Positions 48,831 to 64,000 of a stretch of DNA of 64,000 nt are shown piece after piece (the stretch's first letter is position 1; each line of letters opens with the position of its first letter). This DNA is from Klebsormidium nitens. Taxonomy: Eukaryota > Plantae > Klebsormidiophyceae. The notes under the pieces were generated by a model that worked only from the letters and a program-made list of their open reading frames with translations, did no database searches and was not told the origin of the DNA. The stretch is from contig DF237180.1 of the NCBI GenBank assembly GCA_000708835.1, positions 62,001 to 126,000 of the forward strand. Direction: 5' to 3'. The position numbers and the translations under genes are program-made.

Positions 48831-51800
48831 ATGGAGCCCTCCGACATCACTTCGTTTCTGCAGGCTGCTCTTGCCCCAGATGAGATCGTTAAGTTCCTGT
48901 TTAGGGCGTGGCTGATCATTGTGGGCCTGTTCTGGAACACATGGGCAGTGCTGGCGCAGAGGTAAGACTTCATTTTCCTCTTTTGAAGCTTTCAGTTTGT
49001 TCTTCTCTTGCATGCATGCACCTTGATTGAGGTTCAGTCGGTTATCAGGGGTTGCTCTAAGATAGACTAACCGCTGCATCAGAGAAAGAAGATCATTTCA
49101 ATGCTTGGCGTAAGTTTCATGCACAGAAGTACTGGGGCAGGAGATGCTATTAGAGAACTGCTGATAGTGTCTGGTGCAAGAGATGCTACGAGAACACCGT
49201 TGATAGACTTTGGTGCAACATTCAGGTTGAGCTGCAGTTGCTGGCCAAGAATCATTTATCGCAGTCTATGATTTAAGCCAGTGCCCTCGTCAGCATTGCA
49301 ACTTTTGTAAGTTATGCCTTGCTTGCATGCATCACATGCACTCAGTCTGGTGGTCAAGCGGTGTTTGCGTCTTTAATGCATGGAAGGGAAAATAAGAGTT
49401 CTTAGCTGACCCTTAGCACGTGCTCTCGTTCGAGCTGTGAAATTTCCCTGGCAGTCGCCTTACCGTCAAGTGATGGGATTTGAGAGGTTTGACCTTCCAT
49501 ATGGTGATGCTGTTAGCTGTGCCCTTTGCAGCCAGAAGATCTTTCAGAAGCAGTAAATGCTCATTGTCATCTAAGTGATGAGAAGTAAAGCTGACAAGCA
49601 TATCAACGCCAGACCCATCAATCTGTTGGAGTTCGGCTTACTACAGCTGACCCTGATACTCTGGACCCTTTTATTTGCCAGGTTATTCAGCACAGTAGCA
49701 GGATTTTTCTGACAATCCAACAACAGTTGTGACCCCTTCGAATCTACGAAATGACCAGTTTGTATTCATCCGCCTCTTTTTCACCAGGTGGCAGACCCGG
49801 CGCTGGAAGCAGACCCCTGATGCCGTCCACCCGTACTTCACCCGTGGCCGCAACTTCATTGTCACTGGCCCCACGAGCGGCATCGGGAAAGAGACCGCAA
49901 AGGAGCTGGCCCTGTGCGGGGCAAACGTGGTCCTGGCGTGCCGGGATGTGTCGGCGGGGCAGAAGGTGCTGAGCGAGATCAAAAAGGAAGGGAAGAAGCA
50001 CAAGGTGGAGGTGAATGTGGAGGTGAGGCAGAGGACGGGGAGGACTTTTCATAGTTCCTGGTTCTAAGTGGTGACAGTCAAGTTTGCATGTATCAAGTCT
50101 ATTCTATATCGATTGGGGCTGTGAGTGAGCCGTTCTTCCAAGCATTCAAGGACGCCTGCCTCTGCTTGATGGTTGGACAATATTCTTGCCGCTTTCGCGC
50201 ACCCTAAGAACCCATGATTATGATGCCCTGTATGCAAATGCATTCATTCAGAGCCTCTTACTTGGCGTCCCAAACAAAGAAGCCTCAAACTAGAAAAGCA
50301 GATTGTCTTTTCATCGACCCACTTTCCAGATCAAAGTGATAGGCTTCAGCTCAACTTCAACTTCCAAATTTGGATTCACTTTGGAGAAAGGACAGGTGCT
50401 TCAACGAAGTCTACAAGGCTGTCTTGATGGTGAATCTCAGTGAAGCTTCCTGGCAGAATCTTCTAGAACCTTCCAAGAGAAAAGAGCACGCTCTTTCGCA
50501 GGTGGTGCATCTGGACCTGCGCTCATTCATGTCAGTGCGTGCGTTCGCTCACGAGTGGGAGCAGCGGGGGCAGCCACTGCACTGCCTGATCAACAATGCA
50601 GGCGTCTTCATTCGTGGCCTCAACTGGGCGCCCATCACTGAGGAGGGCTTTGAGGAGCATTTCCAGGTGAGCTACTAGGCGTTGCCTAAATGAATGTCAA
50701 AACGTCCGGAGTGCTACTAACGATGATGCTGTGAATACGATTTGTGACTGAGTTGGATGAGGGAAGAGCCTGGTTGGGCCAAGCATATGAGAGTACACAA
50801 TGTACTGGGTCTCCCTTGAGCCAAGGCCTGGTTTAGCTACAGCCTTTCTGAAGTGTACCTCCTAGCGGCCTGGTCTTAATTGCTTCGATGATTCAATCAC
50901 AATAATTCTTCTGCATCCATCTTAGCAGTCAGCAATGGGTGTGACTACATTGGAAACGTGACTTGCACCTGTCCCTTTTCGAGTAGTTCTAGATCTAAGA
51001 TAGCTTGCCTGCCAACTTACTGCTCCCTTTTGTCGACTCCAGGTCAACTTCCTGGCCCCCGCCCTGCTGTCCCTGCTGTTGCTGCCGTCCCTCCTGCAGG
51101 GAGCTCCTTCTAGGATCGTCAACATCACCTCAGAGGTGAGATTTCAGGCACTTTCGTCGGGCTGAAGTTGTCCGGCCCGTCGCGTTTGGAGGACAAATAC
51201 TTGTTAACTTTTAATACTGACCGGTCCTCTTCGTCGGATGAAAAACTCTATTACAGATAATCATTGGCGGTCGGTTTCCGCGTAATGAAGGTCGAAGCTT
51301 GTCATGACCACTCCCCCGCAAAAACAGACTTTGTCCCCGCATGTGAAAGCCCGTTAATTTCAAAACACAAAGACTGAGACTAGCTGAATGAGGTTTCTTC
51401 TGCGGGAATGTCTCCATACATTTTCTGGTTTTTCCAAGCTAGATCATAAGCAGCTGTTCGTACAGTTGGTCGGCCGTACATCCTGAGGATCTGAGCGGTA
51501 GCCTCTTCTTTACGAGCCTTGGTACCAGATCAATCGGTACCGATCTGATTGCTGCGGACTCACTTATCAAATTGGGTGACTGACTTTGGTAACGTTAATG
51601 GAGCCCGTCTAGAACGTCACCATCCTTCCAATATATGACCATTGTTGGGTCGCTTCTGAGGGTCGGCGTGGCACAGCAAACTCGTCAAGTGACGATATGT
51701 GCCGTCAGAGTCGAGGCAGAGTGGAAACCGGCGGTCGCGACGCTCTGCGTCTTCTCTTTTTTCCTTTTGAAAGATTTCGAGCGCCAGCGCTTGTGAACGG

Positions 51801-54051
51801 AAACGGAAGAAGCGTGCGACTTTCTGAGTGACACAACCTGTGCCCTCGCAGAGCCGCCGGTTCTTGCGCAATTTCCGGCTGGAAGAAGGCCGTTAAAATT
51901 TTGCTATCATACCCGGTCCTCGATGTCGGACCTGTTGTCGCACCTGTGACTCTGCAGACCTCTTGGCTTGCAACACGGTCGGATTCCTTTGGCTCCATTC
52001 TGAGACCTCCCGGCACTCGTCGATGCCAACTGCAGAACCACCGGTCTATGGCTCTCTTTGGCTGCCAGTCGACCGCCAGCTTGTCGATGTATATCCCCAC
52101 TCAGAAATCTTTCCCCAACCCTCCATTTACCTCAAGACCCTTTCCTAACCGTCGATCCCGCTGCTCTGCAGGGCCACAAGCTCGTGACGACCGTCGATCT
52201 AGAGGGCATGCGGCGCGGCAAGGGCAAGCACTGGTACGCGTGGAGCATGTTTGGCGCCTACTGCCAGAGCAAGTTGGCATCTACCATCTTCAGCATCGAG
52301 CTGCACCGCCGGCTGCCGAGTACCGCCCATACGGAGGTGGTTGCCATGCACCCCGGCTTCTGCGGAACCGAAGGTAGGTTTTGGTCTACTGGGTTGAGAC
52401 GTCTTTGGTAACCGGACGGGGCGGAGAGAAAAGTTTTCCTTGTCCGGATTGCAAGTTGCGATTCTGAATGTTTGCCCTCTGCTCCATCCCAATGGAGCGG
52501 TAAACGAGGGTCATCTTGGAGGCAACAAGTCTGACTAGCGCCCGGGTCGTATCGCAGGTTTGGTATTGTTGCAAGCAGAAGCGGATCTTGCACGCAAAAT
52601 CGATTTCGCGAAAGCGTCGCCCTCTTGACTGTCAGATTGAGAGCTTTACAAAGCAGATGTCCTGACCGGAAGATAGGACTCCTCACAGATCGTTATTATC
52701 GTAATTCAATCTCAGCGATCCGCAACTTACCTGTGGGTAGTGCAATGGTTTCGAACGATTCACAGACCCTGCTGCTCCGTTCGAGGGTTTCGAAACAGCG
52801 CCCATTGATTCCGAGAAGTGATCTGAGAGACAAAGTCGCTTAACGTAATACTTTTCGTGCCAGGCATCCGCAACTTCCTGTGGGTGGTGCAATGGTTCTA
52901 CAAGGCGCTCGGCCCGCTGCTGGGCATCTTCCTGACGTGCAACGAGGGCGCGCGGGGCCCTCTTTTCGCGGCGACGAGCCCGGTCGTAGTCGCGCAAGCC
53001 AGGAGGCTGCGGGCGCTTCAGTCGCGGAAAGGGCCCTACTATAATGCGGGGGGGTATGCAGAGACCGTCGGCCCCCAGGCTCAGGTAAGGCACTTGTGCG
53101 CTTCGTCTTGTTGGCTCTTTGTTTCTGGTGAAGGAGAGTGTTAAGTGTTTCTGTTGTAGAGTATCCGATTTCTGGGGGCTTGTGATTTACATTGGCTTCT
53201 CCGGCAAACGGGGGTTGCTCCAAAGAACTGATATCGGACCCTGGTTAGGAGAACTCGGGTTCTGATGTGTGTTGAAATCAGAATGGATGGTGGACGGAGT
53301 TTGGTCCTAAATTTTCGAACTAGCTGTTTGTTTGGCTGATATAAAAACTTCTTAAATCATGAACGTTTTTGCGCTAAGCGTTGAGCATCAGCTTATACTC
53401 GGCGCCGGACCGCTTCGGCGACCCCAGAGCCAATATTAGATTTTTCCTTCCACGATCAGCCTTAGAATAAACGCGAGACTTCTACCAAGTCGGTAAGGTA
53501 TCAAAGTCTGGTCGAAGGATAAGCTGTCTATTTAGCCCCGCGCTCGAGAATGTCGTAAACTGGCGTCAAACTCGGGCCCTTCGGCCCGTAAAACTCAGTT
53601 TCTTTTTACGCAAAGCTTCAACGTTCGCTCGCATGTTGGATTGAACATACTTGTTCTTCCGTAGCTCTGCATTCTTTGTATTCAAGGAGTGGCACTCTTG
53701 AACGGCCTCGGATTAACGTCAGCTTATCTGCTACTTCATTTGGGTGAAGGTTATTCGACATTGAGCAATGGCTTACGTTATCGTGTCGCTTTCATTTCGC
53801 AGGACCCTCGCCTGGCTGCGGAGCTTTGGGACGAGACGATGCACATCCTCAATCTGCCCACCGACTATGTGGAGCGGAAAGTTTCCGCTCACCTGAAGAG
53901 CCGGCCGGAAACCGCAGGGAGGGAGGCGGAAATGATCGAAGCGGAAGCCATGAACGTCACCTTGCCGGAGGAGAATACGGGGTGGAGCAGGCTGGTCGGA
54001 TACGTTCCTCAATCCTGGTTCAAGTGGGTCAAGTGGGTGAAATGGTTGTAA
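48831..54051 (+). CDS. Short-chain dehydrogenase/reductase, FOREVER YOUNG (FEY)/retinol dehydrogenase-like, about 431 aa, 7 exons
   Basis: Exons 48831-48961, 49788-50022, 50502-50666, 51043-51135, 52172-52373, 52864-53084, 53803-54051; in phase (1296 nt). Motifs FIVTGPTSGIGKETAKEL, LHCLINNAG, FEEHFQ|VNFLAPALLSLLLLPSLLQGAPSRIVNITSE and YCQSK; ELWDETMHILNLPTDYVE resembles Arabidopsis FEY as recalled. Confidence 0.88.
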
Positions 54052-55488
54052 AGTGGGCAAAGCTTGTGTAATATTCTCAGTGCTTCTTGACTTAAGAGCT
54101 ATTGTAGGCTGAGGTCGTGGTAATCGACAAGAGGGGATATGCTGTCATTGATCGGACTTTGGTAGGCTAGTAGCTTCGCGCACGCGCAGTTTGACACAAG
54201 AAGAGGCTCGTAGAGCATATGACGCCATTGCATGTACGGCATGTATAGATTGCCATGCATATACGCACCTTTCTTTGCAATGTAATTTGAAAGCATCGAA
54301 GGTTTTCTTGAGGATTGAGCATTTGGATCAGGAATTGCTGTTTAAAGGGCAGTGATCAGTATATCAATTTACAAGTTAAGAGCACTATCGTTTGACCTGA
54401 ACGATAGTGCATCAATCTTGCCAGGTTGATGCAAACTATCTTGACCGGGACCCACTACAGTAGATCTGTAGACGTCTGACTGGACTGTGTGTTTTTTATA
54501 AATTTGATCGAGCCGCCACTTACCGGATTTGACATCAACGCTTCCCATTCCTTGCATGGGCCTGTCATAGTTTTTCTAAAAACTGGTTTGGAGGAAAAAA
54601 GAATACGTGCAGTGAAAATGGTTGTAGAAATGTCTACATTTTCTGAATGTATGAATCGATCGAACCTCTACTTTTAGGAGGATGTATAGCCTGCCAGGCA
54701 AACATGCGTTTCTTTCTCCTAAATTTCTTATCAGGATATGTCCGTGTTCTAGAGGCGCATCTAGGGGGTGGTCAGGCTTGCCGCCGTCGCCTGTCGCGCA
54801 TGGGACCCATTGCCATTGGAGCCTGGAGGCTGAAGAAGGCTTATACAGTAATGATCGGATCATCATACATAACCGAGGTCTGTCATACTGGAATCTGGAT
54901 TCTGAACATTCAACACTCCCATCCGACATATCTGCTTGCACCTTTTGCCATGACATGCATTATTCACATGCTCCGAGTTTAATGATTTCAATCAAGGTCC
55001 GGACTGCGGAAGATCAGGGCGAAAGCTGTCAGATCGTACGGTCGTCACCATGCAGCCTGCAGGTCTACCGTCTCCGTCGGAGTCCGGAGTCCGTCCAATC
55101 ATCAAATTGTCAGTCCGTACCATATCGAGATTCGGCGCCCCGAATTACGGGCTGCAAAATCGGGCCGGGATTGCTACCAGGCTTGCAGCCTGCAGGTCCG
55201 TCGCGACGCGTCGTCCAGAAATGTGGCGCAACTGCAACATCTGGCGAGCCTCATGGTGCTGCTGCCGCCAAGAGAGCAAAATGCAGGCCGCCGCAGGATC
55301 CATGAACTTGAAGCGGCATCCATGACGACGTACATACGTGAAGGACAGGAATGAAGTCAGCTTGGGATTGCGTTAAATAGGTACGTACTTCGACTCTTTT
55401 GAGTGGAGGCCCCTTGCTTAAGTGAACAGTAGCTTGTGCCAGCAACGTGCATGAGAGAATAGCATGGTAGCAGGGACGGTAGCAGATC

Positions 55489-56499: not shown

Positions 56500-59400
56500 A
56501 TGGTGTCAGTTGATGGTCACAGTCCTCCGCACTTGCAGGAGTCAGCATCTCTGGATCAGGACAGACTACGAAGGCCTGAGTATTATGCACTCCCGGCCAA
56601 AAACATGAGCATGGCGTCACCTGAACCCCTCATGGACCTCAATGGGGTGCCGTCAATGTTAGAGAAGGCCCTCTGCTTTCTGGAGACAAGAGGCGCGGTG
56701 GCGGAGGGAATCCTGAGGAAGTCGGCAGATGTTGAGCAAGTGGAGTACAGGCTATCCACATATTATCAAGGTGCGAGTCATACCCCTCATACACTAATGC
56801 ACTCTAGCTCTGTCGCCCTCTGAGTAATCTGGAGCCTGGTCCATAGAGGGCAAAGTTTTTCAGAGGCCCCTTGTCTGGTCCATCACTTCAATTGCATGCC
56901 ATGTAGCCAGACTGTGCTCTGCTATAACAAAAGTTGAGGAGGCTGGTACTTCAAAGGCCCTCATTGATTGCCGACCCTGCTTCTTCAAGAGAGTTTCGTG
57001 ACATTCTCCCTGCTTTTGTTTTCAATCCTGAGTGGTGGCTGCGCTCCGGGGACTGCACTCGCTGCTTTCAACGTTCAAATGAACGTGCTTGCGAAGCCCA
57101 AAGCGTATGGATTTTACTATCATACCTTCCTTCACTCATGTAGGGAAAGATGAATTTGGCGAGCGTGAAAACCCCCATGTGGTGGCGGACTGCATGAAAC
57201 ACCAGCTGCGGCGGATGGCCTTCTCGCCCGTGCCTGAAGAGTGCTGCACTGCGCTGCTCCAAGCCTACTGTAAGGTTTTACAGAAGTCACCCACTTCAGC
57301 TTTCTGTATCTGGTGGGTCTTTCAGGTTTTCGAATGTGCAGACTCCCGCCTTGGCAGTTTCTGAGGGGTGCTGCAACGCGCTGCTCCGAGCCTACTGTAA
57401 GGTCCAAAGGAGCTCGACCCTTTCTTGGTTTTTGGAACCCAGTGGGGTACATAGGAGTTTAAGGTCATCAGATCTCCCTCCTATCAGTGCGCAAGGAGTG
57501 CTGCAGACTGCTGCTCGGTGACTACTAGGTTATTGCAATGGACCCAGTTGCTAAGCAAACTTGTTCAGGGTTACTAAGTTCTTTGGTGGTCTAGGACTTT
57601 CGAATCTATGAAGCTGGTGGATTCTCCAAGATCCCGCTCTCCGAACTGCCTGAGCTCAGATGCGCGGTAAGACCGAGGGCCTTATGTATTGATCAACTCC
57701 ATTGAGCAGTTTCCACAGTGTTCAAATATCTGAAGGGTGAAGCTGGAGATAAATTAATTTCCTGTTGAGAATTTTGATCTGCCGTCCAACCCAACATTAA
57801 AATGTCAAAACATGCTTCCCAAAGTTTCTGATACTTACTGTGTTGTGACCGACATCTCACGGTGACTGCTAGTCGATGCATCTGACACTGGCTTGCCGCT
57901 CAAAAGAAGTTGGATCTGGTAGCCCTACATGCATCGATCCCACAGAAACCCCGTTGAAGAGTATCTCGAGATTTGATGCTTAAGGGAGCAGCGTCTTAGC
58001 ATCTTTGTCTGCTTGCTAGGGTGTAGGAATTCGCGTGCCGCGTCTGCAAAATCAAATGCGCACTACAGGTGTGAAGATGTTCAGAGATTTGATGGACGGC
58101 TCGTCGCTTGTTGATGCAGTTGCGTCGCCAGCTGGCACGGAGGCCGAGGCTCTGCACACAGCAGTGGTGGAGACATGCCCAGAGGAAAACAGGAGACTTA
58201 TGCACAGGCACGTGACCCCCCGCTCTTATTCTCCATGCTTTGCCTTCGATTGTTGGCTTGGATAATACTTTGCCGAAGGATGTGGTGCATTCGTTTCTAA
58301 AGGAAATTGAAACTGCTTGGAATAGGGAGAAGGTCGTGCTTTGTTGGCTGAGATGTTCCGCAAACCTTCAAAAGGCCAGCTGCAGATTTGTTTTCAGGGA
58401 GAGGCCATAGGGCACTTTTTTCCAAAAAGACTTTCCATTGCGACAAACGTACTGGAGTAGAACTGGGATCTGGCGGCTTTCTCCGAGCAGCGCTTGTTTC
58501 CGCGAATTGCGATGTCCTGGCAAAGACCCTCTGAATCGTAGACTGTCGGGTCGTGCTATTGGGAATCGTGTTGGAGATTTAAAGCGTACAGCTGCGGTTC
58601 CTCAGCTTGTTGGTCCACTTCAAGTAGAGAAGCAGCCCCGATTCCAAGGAAGGCGTGAATCATTCAGTGAAGGCGTTTGCGGTCACTTCTCAGATCCCGT
58701 CCAGTATCATCCGAAACTTCGAAATCAGTCCGGATGTCTAAGACACATAGACCAACTTTGAACCCGCATCGACATCCGTTTTGACTGTATGAACGCTGTG
58801 CACGCTGCATACGTCGGCCGATGACCTGGCTTTTCAGTCCGATGTTATCCGAGATCCTTTGATCCCCTGAAACTCTCCTTTAAAGTTCCAATCAATTTAT
58901 AAGAACCTCCAGATCGACCACACACACCCGTCACCCGTGTCCGGTTCCGCAGCGTCCAAGAGCAAGCTCACTGTGTAGACCCGACTGTCCAAACTGTCCG
59001 GTTTGCTGAAGCCGTCCACACCGTCCGCAGGATCCTGCACACCCTGCACGTGGTGTCGTGCCACGTGGCGGCCAACAGCATGTCCACGGACGCCGTCGCG
59101 CGGTGCATGGCGCCTCTCTTACTGCGGCCGCTGTTCCTGGGGGAGATCTTCCCGGGCGCGAACGAGAGCGGCTCCTTTTCCGGCAGCCGCCACGGCAGCA
59201 GCGGCTCCTTTTCCGGCAGCCGGCACGGCAGGAGCGGCTCGTTTTCCGGCAGCCGTCACGGCGAGGGCAGCGGCTCATTTTCCGGCAGCCGGCACGGGGA
59301 GAACAACATCGTGAGCGCCATGAGCGCGGCCAGCTCGGCGGTGGACCTGACGGTGGCGCTGATAAACGCGCACGACACCGTTTTCGAGGTAACGAATTAG

Positions 59401-62400
59401 GTAGAATTAGGTCTGTTTCTCCATTCTCGAATCTGCGGTCCACGATCTCGTTCTACCTTTTCCTTTTTGTGTGCTCAGTTCCAATCGTCTTTTCAATCCA
59501 GCGAGCGGTGGATCTAAATACCGGCGCTGACCAAGCTGACGTGCGATGCTGTTTTTGGTGACGGGTGGTGTCCCCTGGTTGTTCCATTTTGTGGTTCCTG
59601 CGCGCTCTGAAGAATATCACTTCGACGGTGGGCCCCTTTTGTGGCGGTTATCAGGGCGCATGACACCGTGCTCGAAGTGGATTCTTTTGTGCTTCTGATC
59701 TTTGTTGCTCTGAATCTGCATTGTGAGTTTACGATAGTGCTTTTGTGATAGTCAGTACGATCAGCGCCACCAGCTCGGCGTTCCGACTTTAGGGGGGCGC
59801 TCGACAGAGCGTTCGACGCCTGATCTTGGATTGCTTCCTCTCATTCCTTCAGAAATTCCTTCAATACGGCTTTGTGCATGAAACATGCAAATCAAGCTCT
59901 CGCTCCAAGCCGAAACGCCTTCGCAGGCTGCCGCACATTCCGTCTCATGTTCAATGGAATCTAGCAGATAACGGTTGTGTCATCCTAGGGCACTTGTTAC
60001 ACGGTTTCCGCCCTGGCTTGTCGCCCCACATGACCCTTTTCGTTACTGCCCACAAGATATTGGGGCAACAAAAAAGTACAAAACGATGGTCTCGAGATCG
60101 GTCCTGAAGCTGCGTGGCTGGACGTAACTTTCAACATGGTGGATCTGTGGCTCTACAGCTTGTGTACTTCCTATTTAAGCGGAAGTATTGATTAGAAATG
60201 ACAGTATGTTGTCCTAAAGAAGCGTGGGATAAGCCACGGAAGTGGCCCGACTTTTAACAAGTCTGATCGCAGATTGTCTGTTTATCCCCGCTCTGCAGTC
60301 GGTCCAGCTGTCCCCGTTCGAGCAGCAGCTGGTGCAGAAGACGTGGAAGCTTCTGCAACCCCGGTTAGCGGATCTGGGGCAAGCCGTCTTCACACAGTAA
60401 GGCCACCGGCATGTGTTCCAAACGGGGTTAAGGAGAACCCGTCAGAGGTCAATCCTGGCAGATTAGCTTGCGGAGGTCAGACGTACCAAGGTTTGAGCAA
60501 GAGAAGATGGCAAAGCCAGTGTGCTCCAAGCAGTCAATAAATTGTGGTTTTTATTTCGTCGATCCTACGCGCTTTATCTGCTCGCCGCTTTTCCTTTGTG
60601 GCTTTGCTTCCTAGGCCTGATAAGCTGCAATTCACCAATTGCAAGCACTGGTAAAATCCAGGCGCCCGTTCTGGTGCTTCTCCACTTCGAAAGGGCCAAC
60701 CTTCAACCTCGTCCGGTTTGGCAGTATTGTGCCTGTCTGCATTTCCTGAAGACAATTTGTCGGCCTTCGCCTCGCAGTCTGTTCCAGAAGGCGCCCAAAA
60801 CCCGCCCGCTGTACACGTGTCCGCTCCGGCTGGCGGACGGCGACCGCCGGACGCCGGACGGGCACGCCATCCCGACGCACGCGGTCGAGATCGTGTCCAC
60901 CGTTAGTTGCTAGACCCTGTTGCTTCATTTTCCAGAACAAATGAGTGTTTGCGGAGGAACATGTTGCGAACATGGGCGCGGCTGTTTGAATGCATGCGGT
61001 CAAGACTGTTGCCACCGCGAGTTACTGAACACCTAGACCGAAAGGGTTCAGTGAGATGTGGGCTTCCAACACGGGCTGGCCGCTGGTAACGTTAACCGTG
61101 TCCACGCTGAGTCTCTGGACATCAGGTATGGCCTTTTTAGAATAGTATGGAGTCCTTCGCGAAGAAAAGGAGAGTGGGTCCCCGCTCACGGCTTCAACCG
61201 TGATCGGTACTGCCTTCCATCGAAGACCATTGCTTTTGCATCTGCGGTGTCCAAAGTTTGCAAAGAAGAAAGAACGTTTGAAGGAAGGGGCACCTCATTG
61301 TGACGCACGCGGATGCGATTCTGTCACCACCGTGGGCCGTTGCTTCGCTCGTTGAGTTCAGGAGTACGTTAGCGCCCGCTGTGCTGCTCCTTCTCATTCC
61401 AGTGAAAGCGCGACATCAGGCTTCGTTCCTTTTTCTCAAATTGGTATTACTTGGCGCCTTAGTAACGTCGAACGAGCAGGTTCTGATGTTCTTTCCGTCA
61501 ACACGGTCGGAGTCTCTTGACGAGAATCCGAGTCCTTCTTTGTGGCTAGAAAACACCAAGATCGACAACAGCCAATCCCCTTGTTATGCGGGGAGACCGA
61601 ACAGTAGCTCCTCAGGGTACTCAAACAGCTAGCTAGCAAGTGTCAGGTCAAACACCTGAGACCATACAAGCAAACCGGAGCAGCAATGCCTACAGACGCC
61701 CCGACCAGCTTCCACAACCGGGTGCGAACCAGCTTCTTAACCCGTTGCAAACCCCTTTCCCGCCGCAGATCGGCCTGGCGGCGTGCCGCATCGGCAGCTC
61801 CTCTCGGATCCTGGCCGTCCTCGAGAGGCTGGGCCAGCGCCACGTGGCGTACGGAGCTGCTCCGGACATGTTCAGCGTCTTCAAGGAGGCGTTCCTCGTC
61901 GCCTTGAAGAAAACTCTAGGTGAAGCGGCGAAACTTGCTGACGTGGCGGCGGCGCCATCTCGAGTGCACAAATGCGCAGTTTCTGCCGCTTCTGTTATTT
62001 TGTGGGCGCCACAGGTGTAGGCCGAATGTAGAAGCGGTTGATCCGCATAGACTAAAGGACGGAGAAGAATCTGCGCGTGATTCACGTGACCTCCAGACAG
62101 ATTGTGGAAAAATTCTCCGAGAGGCCGCCGGCGAACCGGCCCCGTGGGCGGCCAAATCGCGGAGGCTCCCCTCTGATGGTCGCTCAGAAAGGGCACAAGC
62201 GGTTGAGGTCGCAGCGACACTCATTCGCCAGTCAAGTTGTCTATGACGCCTGCGTTTCACCGCGGGCAACCGTGGGCAGTGATCTCTTCTAAGGAACGAG
62301 TTTCAGAAGTAGGGTCACCAAATAGCGGACACGCGATCCGCTTCTCAAGCCCGAGTACCTACCTCGAAAGAGCACGCGAAAACCAGCAGTTTCACTCGGG

Positions 62401-62745
62401 TCGTCTTTCTGCGGTCGAGCAGCCGGCCGTTCTATCTTGATTTTGCCGCTCTACTTTTTCTTTCTAGACCTGTCGCAATCTGGAGGCAGTGTTCAGCTGC
62501 ATCTTGCCACTGTCAGCATCACGGCAGAAAGCTCGAGAACCCTCTCATCCTTCATGAGACTGCGACATACAAGAGACTTGAACCGACGCTGTGGTCTGAA
62601 GCACTTGCACCCGATCTGTTCTGCAGGGGGAGAGCACTTCACGGCGCAAGTCCACAAGGCTTGGTCCAAAGCCCTAGACTCCGTTGTTGCCCACTTGAAG
62701 AAGGGCCTTAAAAGGGGCATCGCCAGCACGAGGGCTAGTTCTTGA
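56500..62745 (+). CDS. RhoGAP (plant REN/PHGAP-type GAP domain) fused to a C-terminal 3/3 globin domain; about 461 aa from ATG 56500, 5' end uncertain
   Basis: Exons 56500-56770, 57144-57269, 58069-58207, 59031-59388 (GAP), then 60299-60396, 60778-60901, 61769-61919, 62627-62745 (globin); 1386 nt, all junctions in phase, one GC donor. GAP: GVPSMLEKALCFLETRGAVAEGILRKSADVEQVE, PHVVADCMKH, CCTALL, PEENRRLMHR|ILH, MSTDAVARCMAPLLLRP. Globin: LSPFEQQLVQKTWKLL, GQAVFTH|LFQKAPKTRPLY, PTHAVEIV, LERLGQRHVAYG, AWSKALDSVV. The RhoGAP and globin identities are each high confidence; the fusion junction is inferred. Confidence 0.72.
59167..59298 (+). repeat. Coding tandem repeat, 4 x (SGSFSGSRHG), ~33-bp unit, inside the RhoGAP domain
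   Basis: AGCGGCTC(C/G/A)TTTTCCGGCAGCCG(C/G/T)CACGG repeated four times in frame. Confidence 0.95.
60299..62745 (+). CDS. Globin domain (3-over-3 fold, phytoglobin-like intron positions) encoded by 4 exons
   Basis: SVQLSPFEQQLVQKTWKLLQPRLADLGQAVFTHLFQKAPKTRPLYTCPLRLADGDRRTPDGHAIPTHAVEIVSTIGLAACRIGSSSRILAVLERLGQRHVAYGAAPDMFSVFKEAFLVALKKTLGGEHFTAQVHKAWSKALDSVVAHLKKGLKRGIASTRASS*. A12 Trp, B10 Phe, C2 Pro, E7 His, F8 His and H8 Trp are recognisable; CD1 is Tyr. Confidence 0.93.
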
Positions 62746-64000
62746 CCACATACCGGTTTGCGTCAAACCTGAAAGCGGCGACTTTGCGCCCTGGTCCGAC
62801 TAACACTACATTAATCACCTATCAATCTCCAAGTAACCCGTCGATTCAAGTGTGAAACGGTTATAAGCACCGGTACCAGGTTAAACGCAAACCTGAGTAC
62901 TTTTACCCGCACTAACCGAAACCCTTGCTTGGAGGACCTTTGACCATTATTCGACTATTCGGAACGAGTGGTGATGGAGACCACATTTGAGAATGATCGG
63001 TGCTTCGTAATTGTCTTGAGGCCAGGAAGGGGGGGGGGGGATATTAAGTATCAGGTTGGAACATTTCCAAAGCATAGGAGTCAGCTGTTATAAGGTAACG
63101 CTTTGCTTCCTATTATGAGCGCTAGCTAGCGACTGCAGGAAGTATACGTTGACGATAATCAGATTACCCGTTCGCAAAAGTGTTAGACTACCCTTGTGAT
63201 GAGGATTGATAAATTGCTAACGACCTTTTTAAATTCAAACGTTGGGTCAAACATTAACCAATTGGACAGGCGTGACGGTCAAGTATATGGCCGTTCGCAT
63301 AGGTAGCAAGTAATGTCGCAAGAGGCACAGCAAGGTCGGTGGTGTTGTCAAATAAGGCCTTCAAACATTCATATAGGATCTGACACGAACAAATCCATCG
63401 ACATTACGATGGGCGGCCGATCGACTTCCTCTAGGTAACTTAAAGCTAGGTGGCACCTGTGTCCTAATTCTTGAACCCTTGCAGATCAGCACTGAGCATT
63501 TAATTTACAGCTAGCTAATCATGCGCTGAGATAGATCAGGGTCCAAGTGAATCATGGAGGCTTCAAGTGTGTCGGTGACCTTCGATATCGAGTATGGCGT
63601 GTCGACCAGATCCGACACAAGCTGCCATAAGTCGAGGCCGGACTGTATCGCGGGATCTTTGGAGCATTCAGCAAATTTACATGACCAAAGCGGGATCGAA
63701 AAAAGGATGATGCATATGTCATGCATGGTCTTGTCTAAGTACGACATGACACTTAGTAGCCAGATGGCAAGCTCGGGGCTAAACCGTGGCGGCAACGCCG
63801 GCTATCATTGCTTCAACGGGGGATCACGTTCCATGATAGCTATATCGTTGTGAACATCTACTGCTGCCTCCTGCTGCCTTTATAAAAGCCTAATTGCTTT
63901 CGAGGATGCACAGGATGAGTCGAGGCATTCCTCATGCAGCTTGGATCCACTCGACGCCTATCCTAACTTCTACTCTATTTTTTGCAACATTCATGATGTA

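Follow-up and report, generated by a model that had tools for sequence, protein, structure and literature searches.

A predicted RhoGAP-globin chimera at locus KFL_002310190 of Klebsormidium nitens

Globins that are combined with other domains occur in several described systems. In the globin-coupled sensors of bacteria and archaea, an N-terminal sensor-type globin related to the protoglobins is followed by a C-terminal output domain. Globins of the myoglobin fold are joined to signalling or enzymatic modules in androglobin, in other multi-domain globins and in KnNOS2 of Klebsormidium nitens, a nitric oxide (NO) synthase-ankyrin-globin protein with a C-terminal globin from a species that has NO synthases (PMC8728061). 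Here, we analysed KFL_002310190, a gene of K. nitens NIES-2285 whose predicted product carries a RhoGAP domain, that is, the domain of a GTPase-activating protein (GAP) for Rho-family GTPases, followed by a globin. The gene lies at 56500-62745 on the plus strand of the window, by which we mean the whole analysed stretch of 64,000 nucleotides (nt) of scaffold DF237180.1 (assembly GCA_000708835.1). All positions below are those of the window, and a slash within a sequence marks a splice site.

The two halves of the gene have separate counterparts in plants. In RhoGAPs of the PHGAP/REN1 class, a PH domain stands at the N terminus and a long coiled-coil region at the C terminus (PMC11194304), in agreement with what the initial annotation, made from the sequence of the window, had stated for this class. 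Plant haemoglobin genes retain introns at the helix positions B12.2 and E15.0, with a third intron at G7.0 (PMC4732748). The combination of both halves is already public as an unreviewed prediction in UniProt and NCBI: the range 56500-62745 coincides exactly with the annotated gene KFL_002310190, its product GAQ85363.1 (UniProt A0A1Y1I4E0, 429 amino acids (aa), unreviewed) is named 'Globin domain-containing protein', and it has precomputed Pfam matches to RhoGAP and Globin. A full-text literature search for KFL_002310190, for RhoGAP with globin, for a chimeric globin with Rho and for Klebsormidium with globin found no paper describing it. The initial annotation had called the chimera undescribed, which stands for the literature but not for the databases.

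Our preferred reading, to which we give a probability of roughly 0.5, is that KFL_002310190 is a young chimeric transcription unit, in which a truncated PHGAP copy lies upstream of a class-1 phytoglobin-like gene, the last GAP exon is spliced to the first internal globin exon, and the globin is probably also made alone. The fusion itself is a prediction of the public annotation, and the RNA that we placed on the locus neither bridges nor excludes the decisive junction and offers an alternative first exon for the globin.

Domain composition of the two halves

The RNA-guided gene model consists of eight exons, four for the GAP half (e1 to e4) and four for the globin half (g1 to g4, Table 1), and encodes 444 aa, of which 281 belong to the GAP and 163 to the globin. 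Eight exons in one open frame had also been proposed in the initial annotation, and both points hold, whereas its length of 461 aa does not. A Pfam search on the public 429-aa model recovered the two domains that had been expected, PF00620 and PF00042. RhoGAP scored 52.5 bits against a cut-off of 24.5 bits and covered positions 1-146 of the 148 positions of the profile, and Globin scored 59.6 bits. The pieces of the single exons were collinear on both profiles, with e1 at 1-32, e2 at 49-83 and e4 at 114-146 of RhoGAP, and g3 at 46-94 (23.4 bits alone) and g4 at 97-116 of the 117 positions of Globin.

In the GAP half, the arginine finger (EGILR within AEGILRKSAD) is encoded in e1 and aligns with the start of the RhoGAP profile, as had been noticed before. 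We found that the public model GAQ85363.1 runs e2 into its intron (CKVLQKSPTSAFCIW) and skips e3 (58120-58207), so that its RhoGAP domain is incomplete (ETCPEENRRLMHR is missing). This structure is contradicted by the RNA junction 57269>58120; the public model is therefore mis-spliced at e2/e3 and needs correcting. With e3 restored, the catalytic residues of the domain are complete, as read from its sequence. Among predicted structures, the GAP half lies nearest to clusters of streptophyte proteins that combine PH, RhoGAP and Lzipper-MIP1 domains (template modelling score 0.66-0.68), and the domain contains an NxMS...CMAPLLLRP motif, which we take to be typical of the PHGAP/REN1 class. The gene resembles this class in its arginine finger, its motif and its nearest structures, but differs from it in lacking both the PH domain and the coiled coil and in carrying a repeat linker and a globin after the GAP domain. 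Pfam identified no PH domain on the public model or on the open reading frames of at least 55 aa in 54.1-56.5 kb, the stretch that separates the dehydrogenase gene upstream from the start codon of the GAP. Neither Pfam nor the translation showed an Lzipper-MIP1 domain or C-terminal coiled coil after the GAP domain, where repeats and one helix are followed by the globin or a stop, and no CRIB/PBD motif was found by Pfam N-terminal to the GAP domain on the public model. We therefore describe the GAP half as a putative truncated copy of a PH-type RopGAP (PHGAP), in which the GAP domain is followed by a Ser/Gly-rich repeat linker and a single helix and from which the PH domain, the coiled coil and the terminal exon would have been lost. 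Its substrate would be ROP, the Rho GTPase of plants. The SGSFSGSRHG repeats between the GAP core and the last helix are Ser-rich with an S-x-x-x-S spacing; they may form a flexible linker, which is possibly phosphorylated.

Among proteins of solved structure, the globin half matched class-1 non-symbiotic haemoglobins of plants best, and did so from end to end (2oif, 2r50 and 1d8u, E = 1.6e-15 to 7e-13). In the best match (2oif_A, E = 1.6e-15), query residues 5-153 were paired with residues 11-159 of the chain, and the alignment of g1 to the plant haemoglobins begins at residue 3-5. Neuroglobins ranked after the plant haemoglobins, at about 1e-10. The distal His E7 (PTHAVEIV) and the proximal His F8 (LGQRHVAYG), both pointed out in the initial annotation, are kept together with Phe B10, and the stretches THA and LGxxHxxYG align with those of plant haemoglobins. 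At CD1, the domain carries Tyr and not the conserved Phe (PKTRPLY aligned with PSARQMF). Of its three introns, the first two occupy B12.2 and E15.0; the third falls where the G helix ends (KKTLG/GEHF, phase 1) and not at G7.0. Judged by these features, the C-terminal globin is of the class-1 phytoglobin type and not of the sensor type, and it has the residues predicted for haem binding and for coordination on both sides of the haem. While the full-length match, the two histidines, Phe B10 and the first two introns are shared with class-1 phytoglobins, Tyr CD1, the phase-1 intron at the end of the G helix, a first globin exon without a start codon and the possible fusion to a GAP set the K. nitens globin apart. 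With the globin-coupled sensors it shares the general idea of a globin and a signalling domain in one polypeptide, but its globin is C-terminal, of the plant/neuroglobin (myoglobin-like) type, and matches Pfam Globin, not Protoglobin. Because it is of the phytoglobin type and C-terminal, it falls outside that family, and the analogy with globin-coupled sensors drawn in the initial annotation survives as functional speculation, not as family membership. A single-sequence AlphaFold model of the globin was too poor for use (predicted local distance difference test, 56).

Splicing of e4 to g1 and the competing readings

We examined the sequence on both sides of the proposed fusion. Exon e4 ends with ...GTTTTCGAG/GTAACG at 59388 in phase 0 (TTCGAG/GTAACG), and reading through this donor would give FEVTN, of which VTN lies beyond the exon, and then a TAG at 59398-59400. 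The next strong acceptor, CTCTGCAG/TCG at 60299, follows a pyrimidine tract, is also in phase 0, and opens into the A helix without a Met; these sites were seen in the sequence as they had first been described. Upstream of the acceptor, a stop at 60230-60232 closes the frame, and no in-frame ATG occurs between this stop and the A helix. The predicted fused junction reads ...GTTTTCGAG/TCGGTCCAG, and the joined e4-g1 frame is open through to the TGA at 62743-62745. The gap of 59389-60298 has a GC content of 0.49, which is flat over the codon positions, and resembles the six neighbouring introns in length and composition. Moreover, the gene predictor behind the public annotation independently joined the GAP and the globin at the same place.

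The RNA evidence consisted of Logan contigs of four K. nitens runs (X1-X4), placed on 56752-62750 at a depth of about 3; the four runs hold 5-19% of the sampled words of the gene. Five junctions were supported by contigs, namely e1 to e2 as a loose end (149 nt, ...ATTATCA, before 57142 in X1-X3), 57269>58120 (in X1, GT..AG), 60396>60778, 60901>61769 and 61919>62627 (61917/9>62625/7 in X1-X3). All internal junctions but e3 to e4 and e4 to g1 were observed in this way. From the reading frame and the start of an RNA contig, the intron between e3 and e4 appears to begin with GC and not GT (CACAG/GCACGT...CCGCAG/G): the X1 contig on e4 begins at 59028 with 19 extra letters upstream that are compatible with the e3 end ...CAG, although e3 to e4 is not a listed junction. 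In X2 and X4, g1 and g2 were uncovered. Over the runs together, the g2-g3 intron was nearly all covered by RNA (60912-61133, 61171-61549 and 61359-61917, the last being collinear with g3 and spliced to g4), which could reflect intron retention or an internal start with a 5′-truncated transcript.

The RNA around the two splice sites bears on their use. Contigs covered e4 at 59028-59330 (X1) and 59114-59336 (X3) with a depth of 3-5, whereas none was found in 59352-59751 in any of the four runs, and a second index search found no RNA holding 59389-59884 among the listed runs, which includes any read-through to the TAG at 59398-59400, an outcome that the initial annotation had named, together with an independent start for the globin, as one that would speak against the fusion. 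Since e4 is covered but no collinear RNA continues beyond it, e4 must splice onward; this argues that e4 is a non-terminal exon without a collinear 3′ untranslated region (UTR) and that its donor is used. At the other side, an X1 contig spanning g1, g2 and g3 ends on its left at 60298, 1 nt past the acceptor. The contigs act as de Bruijn unitigs: at g3, spliced and unspliced contigs end at 61798 and the shared contig starts at 61769, which is a fork overlap of 30 nt with k = 31. By the same logic of forks, the 60299 acceptor is in use because the g1 contig ends there.

A number of observations weigh against a fused transcript. No contig bridges 59388>60299 in the four RNA runs, so that of the splice claimed in the initial annotation the in-frame signals and the identical join in the public annotation stand, whereas RNA support for it was not found. 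Both e4 contigs end short of the donor. The contig end at 60298 implies that the molecules crossing the acceptor agree at -1 (G) and differ at -2, while a mixture of unspliced ...CAG and e4 ...GAG molecules predicts an end at 60297; this is a hint that the upstream exon ends in C, T or G followed by G, unless the end arose by chance, for which we estimate 1-3%. The hint concerns one nucleotide of one low-depth contig, and two other contigs show unexplained terminal mismatches of 1 nt. In addition, an RNA island was identified within the gap at 59885-60076, as a 192-nt X1 contig with a depth of 3.9, the same depth as the exons and the globin contig, and it lies upstream of an ATG in strong context. 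Finally, expression is very low (depth about 3), and pieces of introns are nearly as abundant as exons.

The relatives of the globin point in the same direction. An exhaustive HMMER search with g3 found four short relatives of about 50% identity, besides the protein itself and unrelated multi-globin proteins; the multi-globin proteins of echinoderms and dinoflagellates, which were the top matches of the representative search, are no relatives of the fusion. Two Logan contigs (L002 and L003) hold a homologue of g3 alone. Two of the four relatives lie on long metagenome contigs, L004 and L005 (JGI 3300060285 and 3300060284), which hold an algal globin gene that is about 50% identical and has introns at B12.2, at E15.0 and at the end of the G helix. 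Its A-helix exon (L004 6392-6733, L005 7061-7402) consists of a single open frame, which starts at an ATG of its own and includes an N-terminal extension of 85 aa (MNITIPSSDWPEDGG...); no Pfam match was found in this extension, and no RhoGAP lies within 6.4-7 kb upstream of this globin. No convincing remnant of the extension was found in the gap 59389-60298. The L004 and L005 loci are not syntenic with the window and may be paralogues, and for want of synteny they cannot settle orthology. A second RhoGAP-globin protein, of the kind that the initial annotation had suggested looking for, was found neither in the protein searches nor in the exhaustive and representative searches or the metagenome contig scan. 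Among these, the word-indexed protein search gave no matches with the e4 frame, but was swamped by Ser/Gly repeats; with g3 it gave nothing among candidates of 70-222 aa, and with the globin part of the public model it gave this model itself only. The metagenome contig scan with the public model returned no relative. The chimera is so far restricted to one species, and the fusion, if real, is probably lineage-restricted and young. In having a RhoGAP as its partner domain, KFL_002310190 also differs from KnNOS2, androglobin and the other multi-domain globins, and we found no paper or second protein with that pairing.

An alternative is that two separate genes were merged by the public annotation and by the initial annotation, the merging of neighbours on the same strand being a common annotation error. 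The globin would then have its own promoter, a 5′ UTR including 59885-60076, an exon at 60086-60100 encoding MVSRS and a 198-nt intron to 60299, and the GAP would be a short gene or a decaying partial duplicate. Of the ATGs in the gap, the one at 60086, ten bases downstream of the island, stands in the best context for a start (A at -3, G at +4, A-rich leader), and splicing of this candidate exon 0 at 60100>60299 would give MVSRS/SVQLSPFEQQ..., a stand-alone globin of 168 aa, in frame and with a normal N terminus. The contig end at 60298 agrees with the CG at which this exon ends, whereas the AG of e4 predicts 60297, and the island is as deep as the globin contig of the same run. The 198-nt intron would stem from a tandem duplication of the first exon that left a degenerate echo of g1: we found such an echo at 60098-60151, aligned with 60318-60380 (score 37, p ~0.004 in 2000 shuffles), and it starts exactly at the candidate donor with the 7-mer TCGGTCC, which is common to the first bases of g1 and for which 0.06 occurrences are expected in the gap. 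The relatives with their own ATG and no GAP, and a public model that is wrong elsewhere, at e2/e3, also agree with two separate genes. However, the donor GTCCTG is weak, the island ends at 60076, 24 nt before this donor, and contains at least four upstream ATGs, and purely intronic RNA islands occur in the verified g2-g3 intron as well. Thus, of the globin ATG exon in 59400-60298 that the initial annotation had named as a possible counter-finding, a candidate near an RNA island was identified, but no contig with a 60100>60299 junction was seen. Two separate genes would moreover leave the GAP mRNA without a 3′ end, with nothing in 59389-59884 in any listed run though e4 is covered, and one would still expect the g1 acceptor to be joined to the strong donor of e4. 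We regard a merger of two separate genes as possible but somewhat unlikely.

The preferred reading, one chimeric unit with two starts, fits all of these observations. In this unit, GAP transcripts would begin at a promoter upstream of e1, and their donor at 59388 would be spliced to the acceptor at 60299 of the first internal exon of the globin, giving a protein of 444 aa in which the GAP is N-terminal and the globin C-terminal; the globin would probably retain a promoter of its own and a very small first exon (ATG, 60086-60100), from which a stand-alone globin would be made too. With two starts, the contig would end at 60298 because of a fork between ...GAG/ and ...TCG/ molecules, the GAP 3′ UTR would be missing because e4 is spliced onward, and the RNA island would be seen because it belongs to exon 0. 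We consider the chances that a fused mRNA exists, alone or beside a stand-alone globin, to be even or slightly better. The splicing pattern is that of transcription-induced chimeras, in which the last donor of an upstream gene is joined to the first internal acceptor of the next gene on the same strand, skipping the first exon of the latter. In contrast to such conjoined genes, the K. nitens GAP seems to be without a terminal exon, and the chimera would be obligatory rather than occasional for its mRNA. The e4 to g1 junction, an origin by exon shuffling and a functional coupling of the two domains are what we infer for this locus.

Other candidates in the gap were rejected. An exon with an acceptor at 59852/59853 and 84 open codons in the e4 frame, which contains the island, was considered as a terminal exon of the GAP, but its GC content at third codon positions (GC3) of 0.51 is intron-like and it has no Pfam match. 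A mini-exon ATGACA/GTATGT (60198-60203) ends in the best donor of the gap, but just upstream of the acceptor the g1 contig has G and not A, which speaks against this mini-exon, and the ACG in GCCACGG at 60236 as a mutated or near-cognate start of the globin is speculation.

The introns of the gene carry further duplicated pieces. Degenerate echoes of an exon end with its donor were detected 130-440 nt downstream in the three longest introns or gaps, after e2, e4 and g2 (Table 1), with scores of 31-61 against a shuffle maximum of 23-26. The echo of the e4 end and donor in the gap (59641-59678) has parallels in the long introns that follow e2 and g2, both verified by RNA, and thereby favours the chimeric unit. 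Introns littered with such local duplications would also be expected if the locus were evolutionary debris with noisy transcription, in which a truncated PHGAP duplicate and a start-less globin are both decaying, happen to be in frame (a chance of 1 in 3 by phase) and yield no stable protein. Such decay would agree with the low depth of the best runs (about 3), with introns whose pieces are as abundant as exons, with the failure of the protein searches to return an orthologue of either part, with a GAP in which the PH and coiled-coil parts typical of the family are missing, and with Tyr in the place of the conserved Phe at CD1. On the other hand, none of the eight exons has lost its open frame, the catalytic and haem-binding residues are preserved, codon bias is strong (GC3 0.59-0.95, with 0.92 in e4, vs about 0.5 in introns), five splice junctions are precisely used, and the globin can be aligned in full with functional haemoglobins of plants at E = 1.6e-15. 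Debris of this kind is, in our judgement, improbable.

Possible coupling of haem state to ROP signalling

If the fused protein is made, two modes of action can be proposed. In the first, the ligand or redox state of the haem (O2, NO) would alter the activity of the GAP on ROP. In the second, a globin of the NO-dioxygenase type would be carried to sites of ROP-GTP. NO is a plausible ligand because K. nitens has NO synthases, one of which is fused to a globin (PMC8728061). The strongest form of the first mode is that the haem O2/NO/redox state of one RopGAP-phytoglobin polypeptide directly sets the rate at which ROP-GTP is switched off, as a hard-wired 'ROP rheostat', and we hold this to be an unlikely, if attractive, outcome. 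The ROP/RopGAP4 rheostat for oxygen-deprivation tolerance of Arabidopsis, as presented where PMC3634410 cites Baxter-Burrell 2002, runs through the transcription of RopGAP4.

Were the fused protein made and its domains coupled, a Rho-family GTPase switch would for the first time be directly wired to a haem-based sensor of gas or redox state. To our knowledge, the interactions among plant ROP signalling, reactive oxygen species from NADPH oxidase, hypoxia tolerance and phytoglobin/NO chemistry are known only via indirect steps. Even without coupling, the locus would illustrate cleanly how a chimeric gene can arise from a truncated copy placed upstream of the first intron of another gene.

Feature coordinates and neighbouring genes

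Table 1. Exons, candidate elements and degenerate echoes at the KFL_002310190 locus, in window positions
Feature	Position	Strand	Description and evidence
GAP exon e1	56500-56770	+	ATG, N-terminal 50 aa, start of RhoGAP with EGILR; donor CAAG/GTGCGA, phase 1; translation, Pfam
GAP exon e2	57144-57269	+	KDEFGERENPHVVADCMKHQLRRMAFSPVPEECCTALLQAY; donor ACT/GTAAGG; Pfam, RNA junction 57269>58120
Echoes after e2	57357-57396, 57487-57526		
GAP exon e3	58120-58207	+	ASPAGTEAEALHTAVVETCPEENRRLMH; absent from public model; apparent GC donor CACAG/GCACGT; RNA junction 57269>58120
GAP exon e4	59031-59388	+	RhoGAP end (NSMSTDAVARCMAPLLLRP), Ser/Gly-rich repeat linker, final helix; donor GAG/GTAACG, phase 0
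Tandem repeats within e4	59167-59301	+	Four units of 33-36 nt encoding SGSFSGSRHG(x); repeat search family D1, 82-100% identity
Gap between e4 and g1	59389-60298	+	910 nt; fusion intron, or intron plus the globin's own 5′ exon
Echoes after e4	59641-59678, 59748-59780		
Candidate globin exon 0	59885-60100	+	RNA island 59885-60076, ATG 60086, donor TCG/GTCCTG at 60100, phase 0
Degenerate g1 copy (echo)	60098-60151	+	Local alignment to 60318-60380
Globin exon g1	60299-60396	+	A and B helices, no Met; acceptor CTCTGCAG/TCG; donor ACA/GTAAGG at B12.2
Globin exon g2	60778-60901	+	C to E helices, Tyr CD1, distal His E7; donor ACC/GTTAGT at E15.0
Echoes after g2	61288-61325, 61097-61120		
Globin exon g3	61769-61919	+	E to G helices, proximal His F8 (LGQRHVAYG); Pfam, PDB alignment, RNA
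Globin exon g4	62627-62745	+	H helix, stop TGA 62743-62745; Pfam, RNA junction in three runs

The genes on both sides showed no link to the RhoGAP-globin locus. Upstream and on the same strand lies a short-chain dehydrogenase gene (adh_short) at 48832-54052 of the window (L001 2332-7552), and downstream, on the opposite strand, an ankyrin-repeat gene (L001 18120-21585). Between the dehydrogenase gene and the start of the GAP, an open reading frame at 54986-55351 gave a sub-threshold Pfam match to 'Effector protein Avr2' (22.4 bits against a cut-off of 27); its composition is non-coding-like, and the match is probably due to chance.

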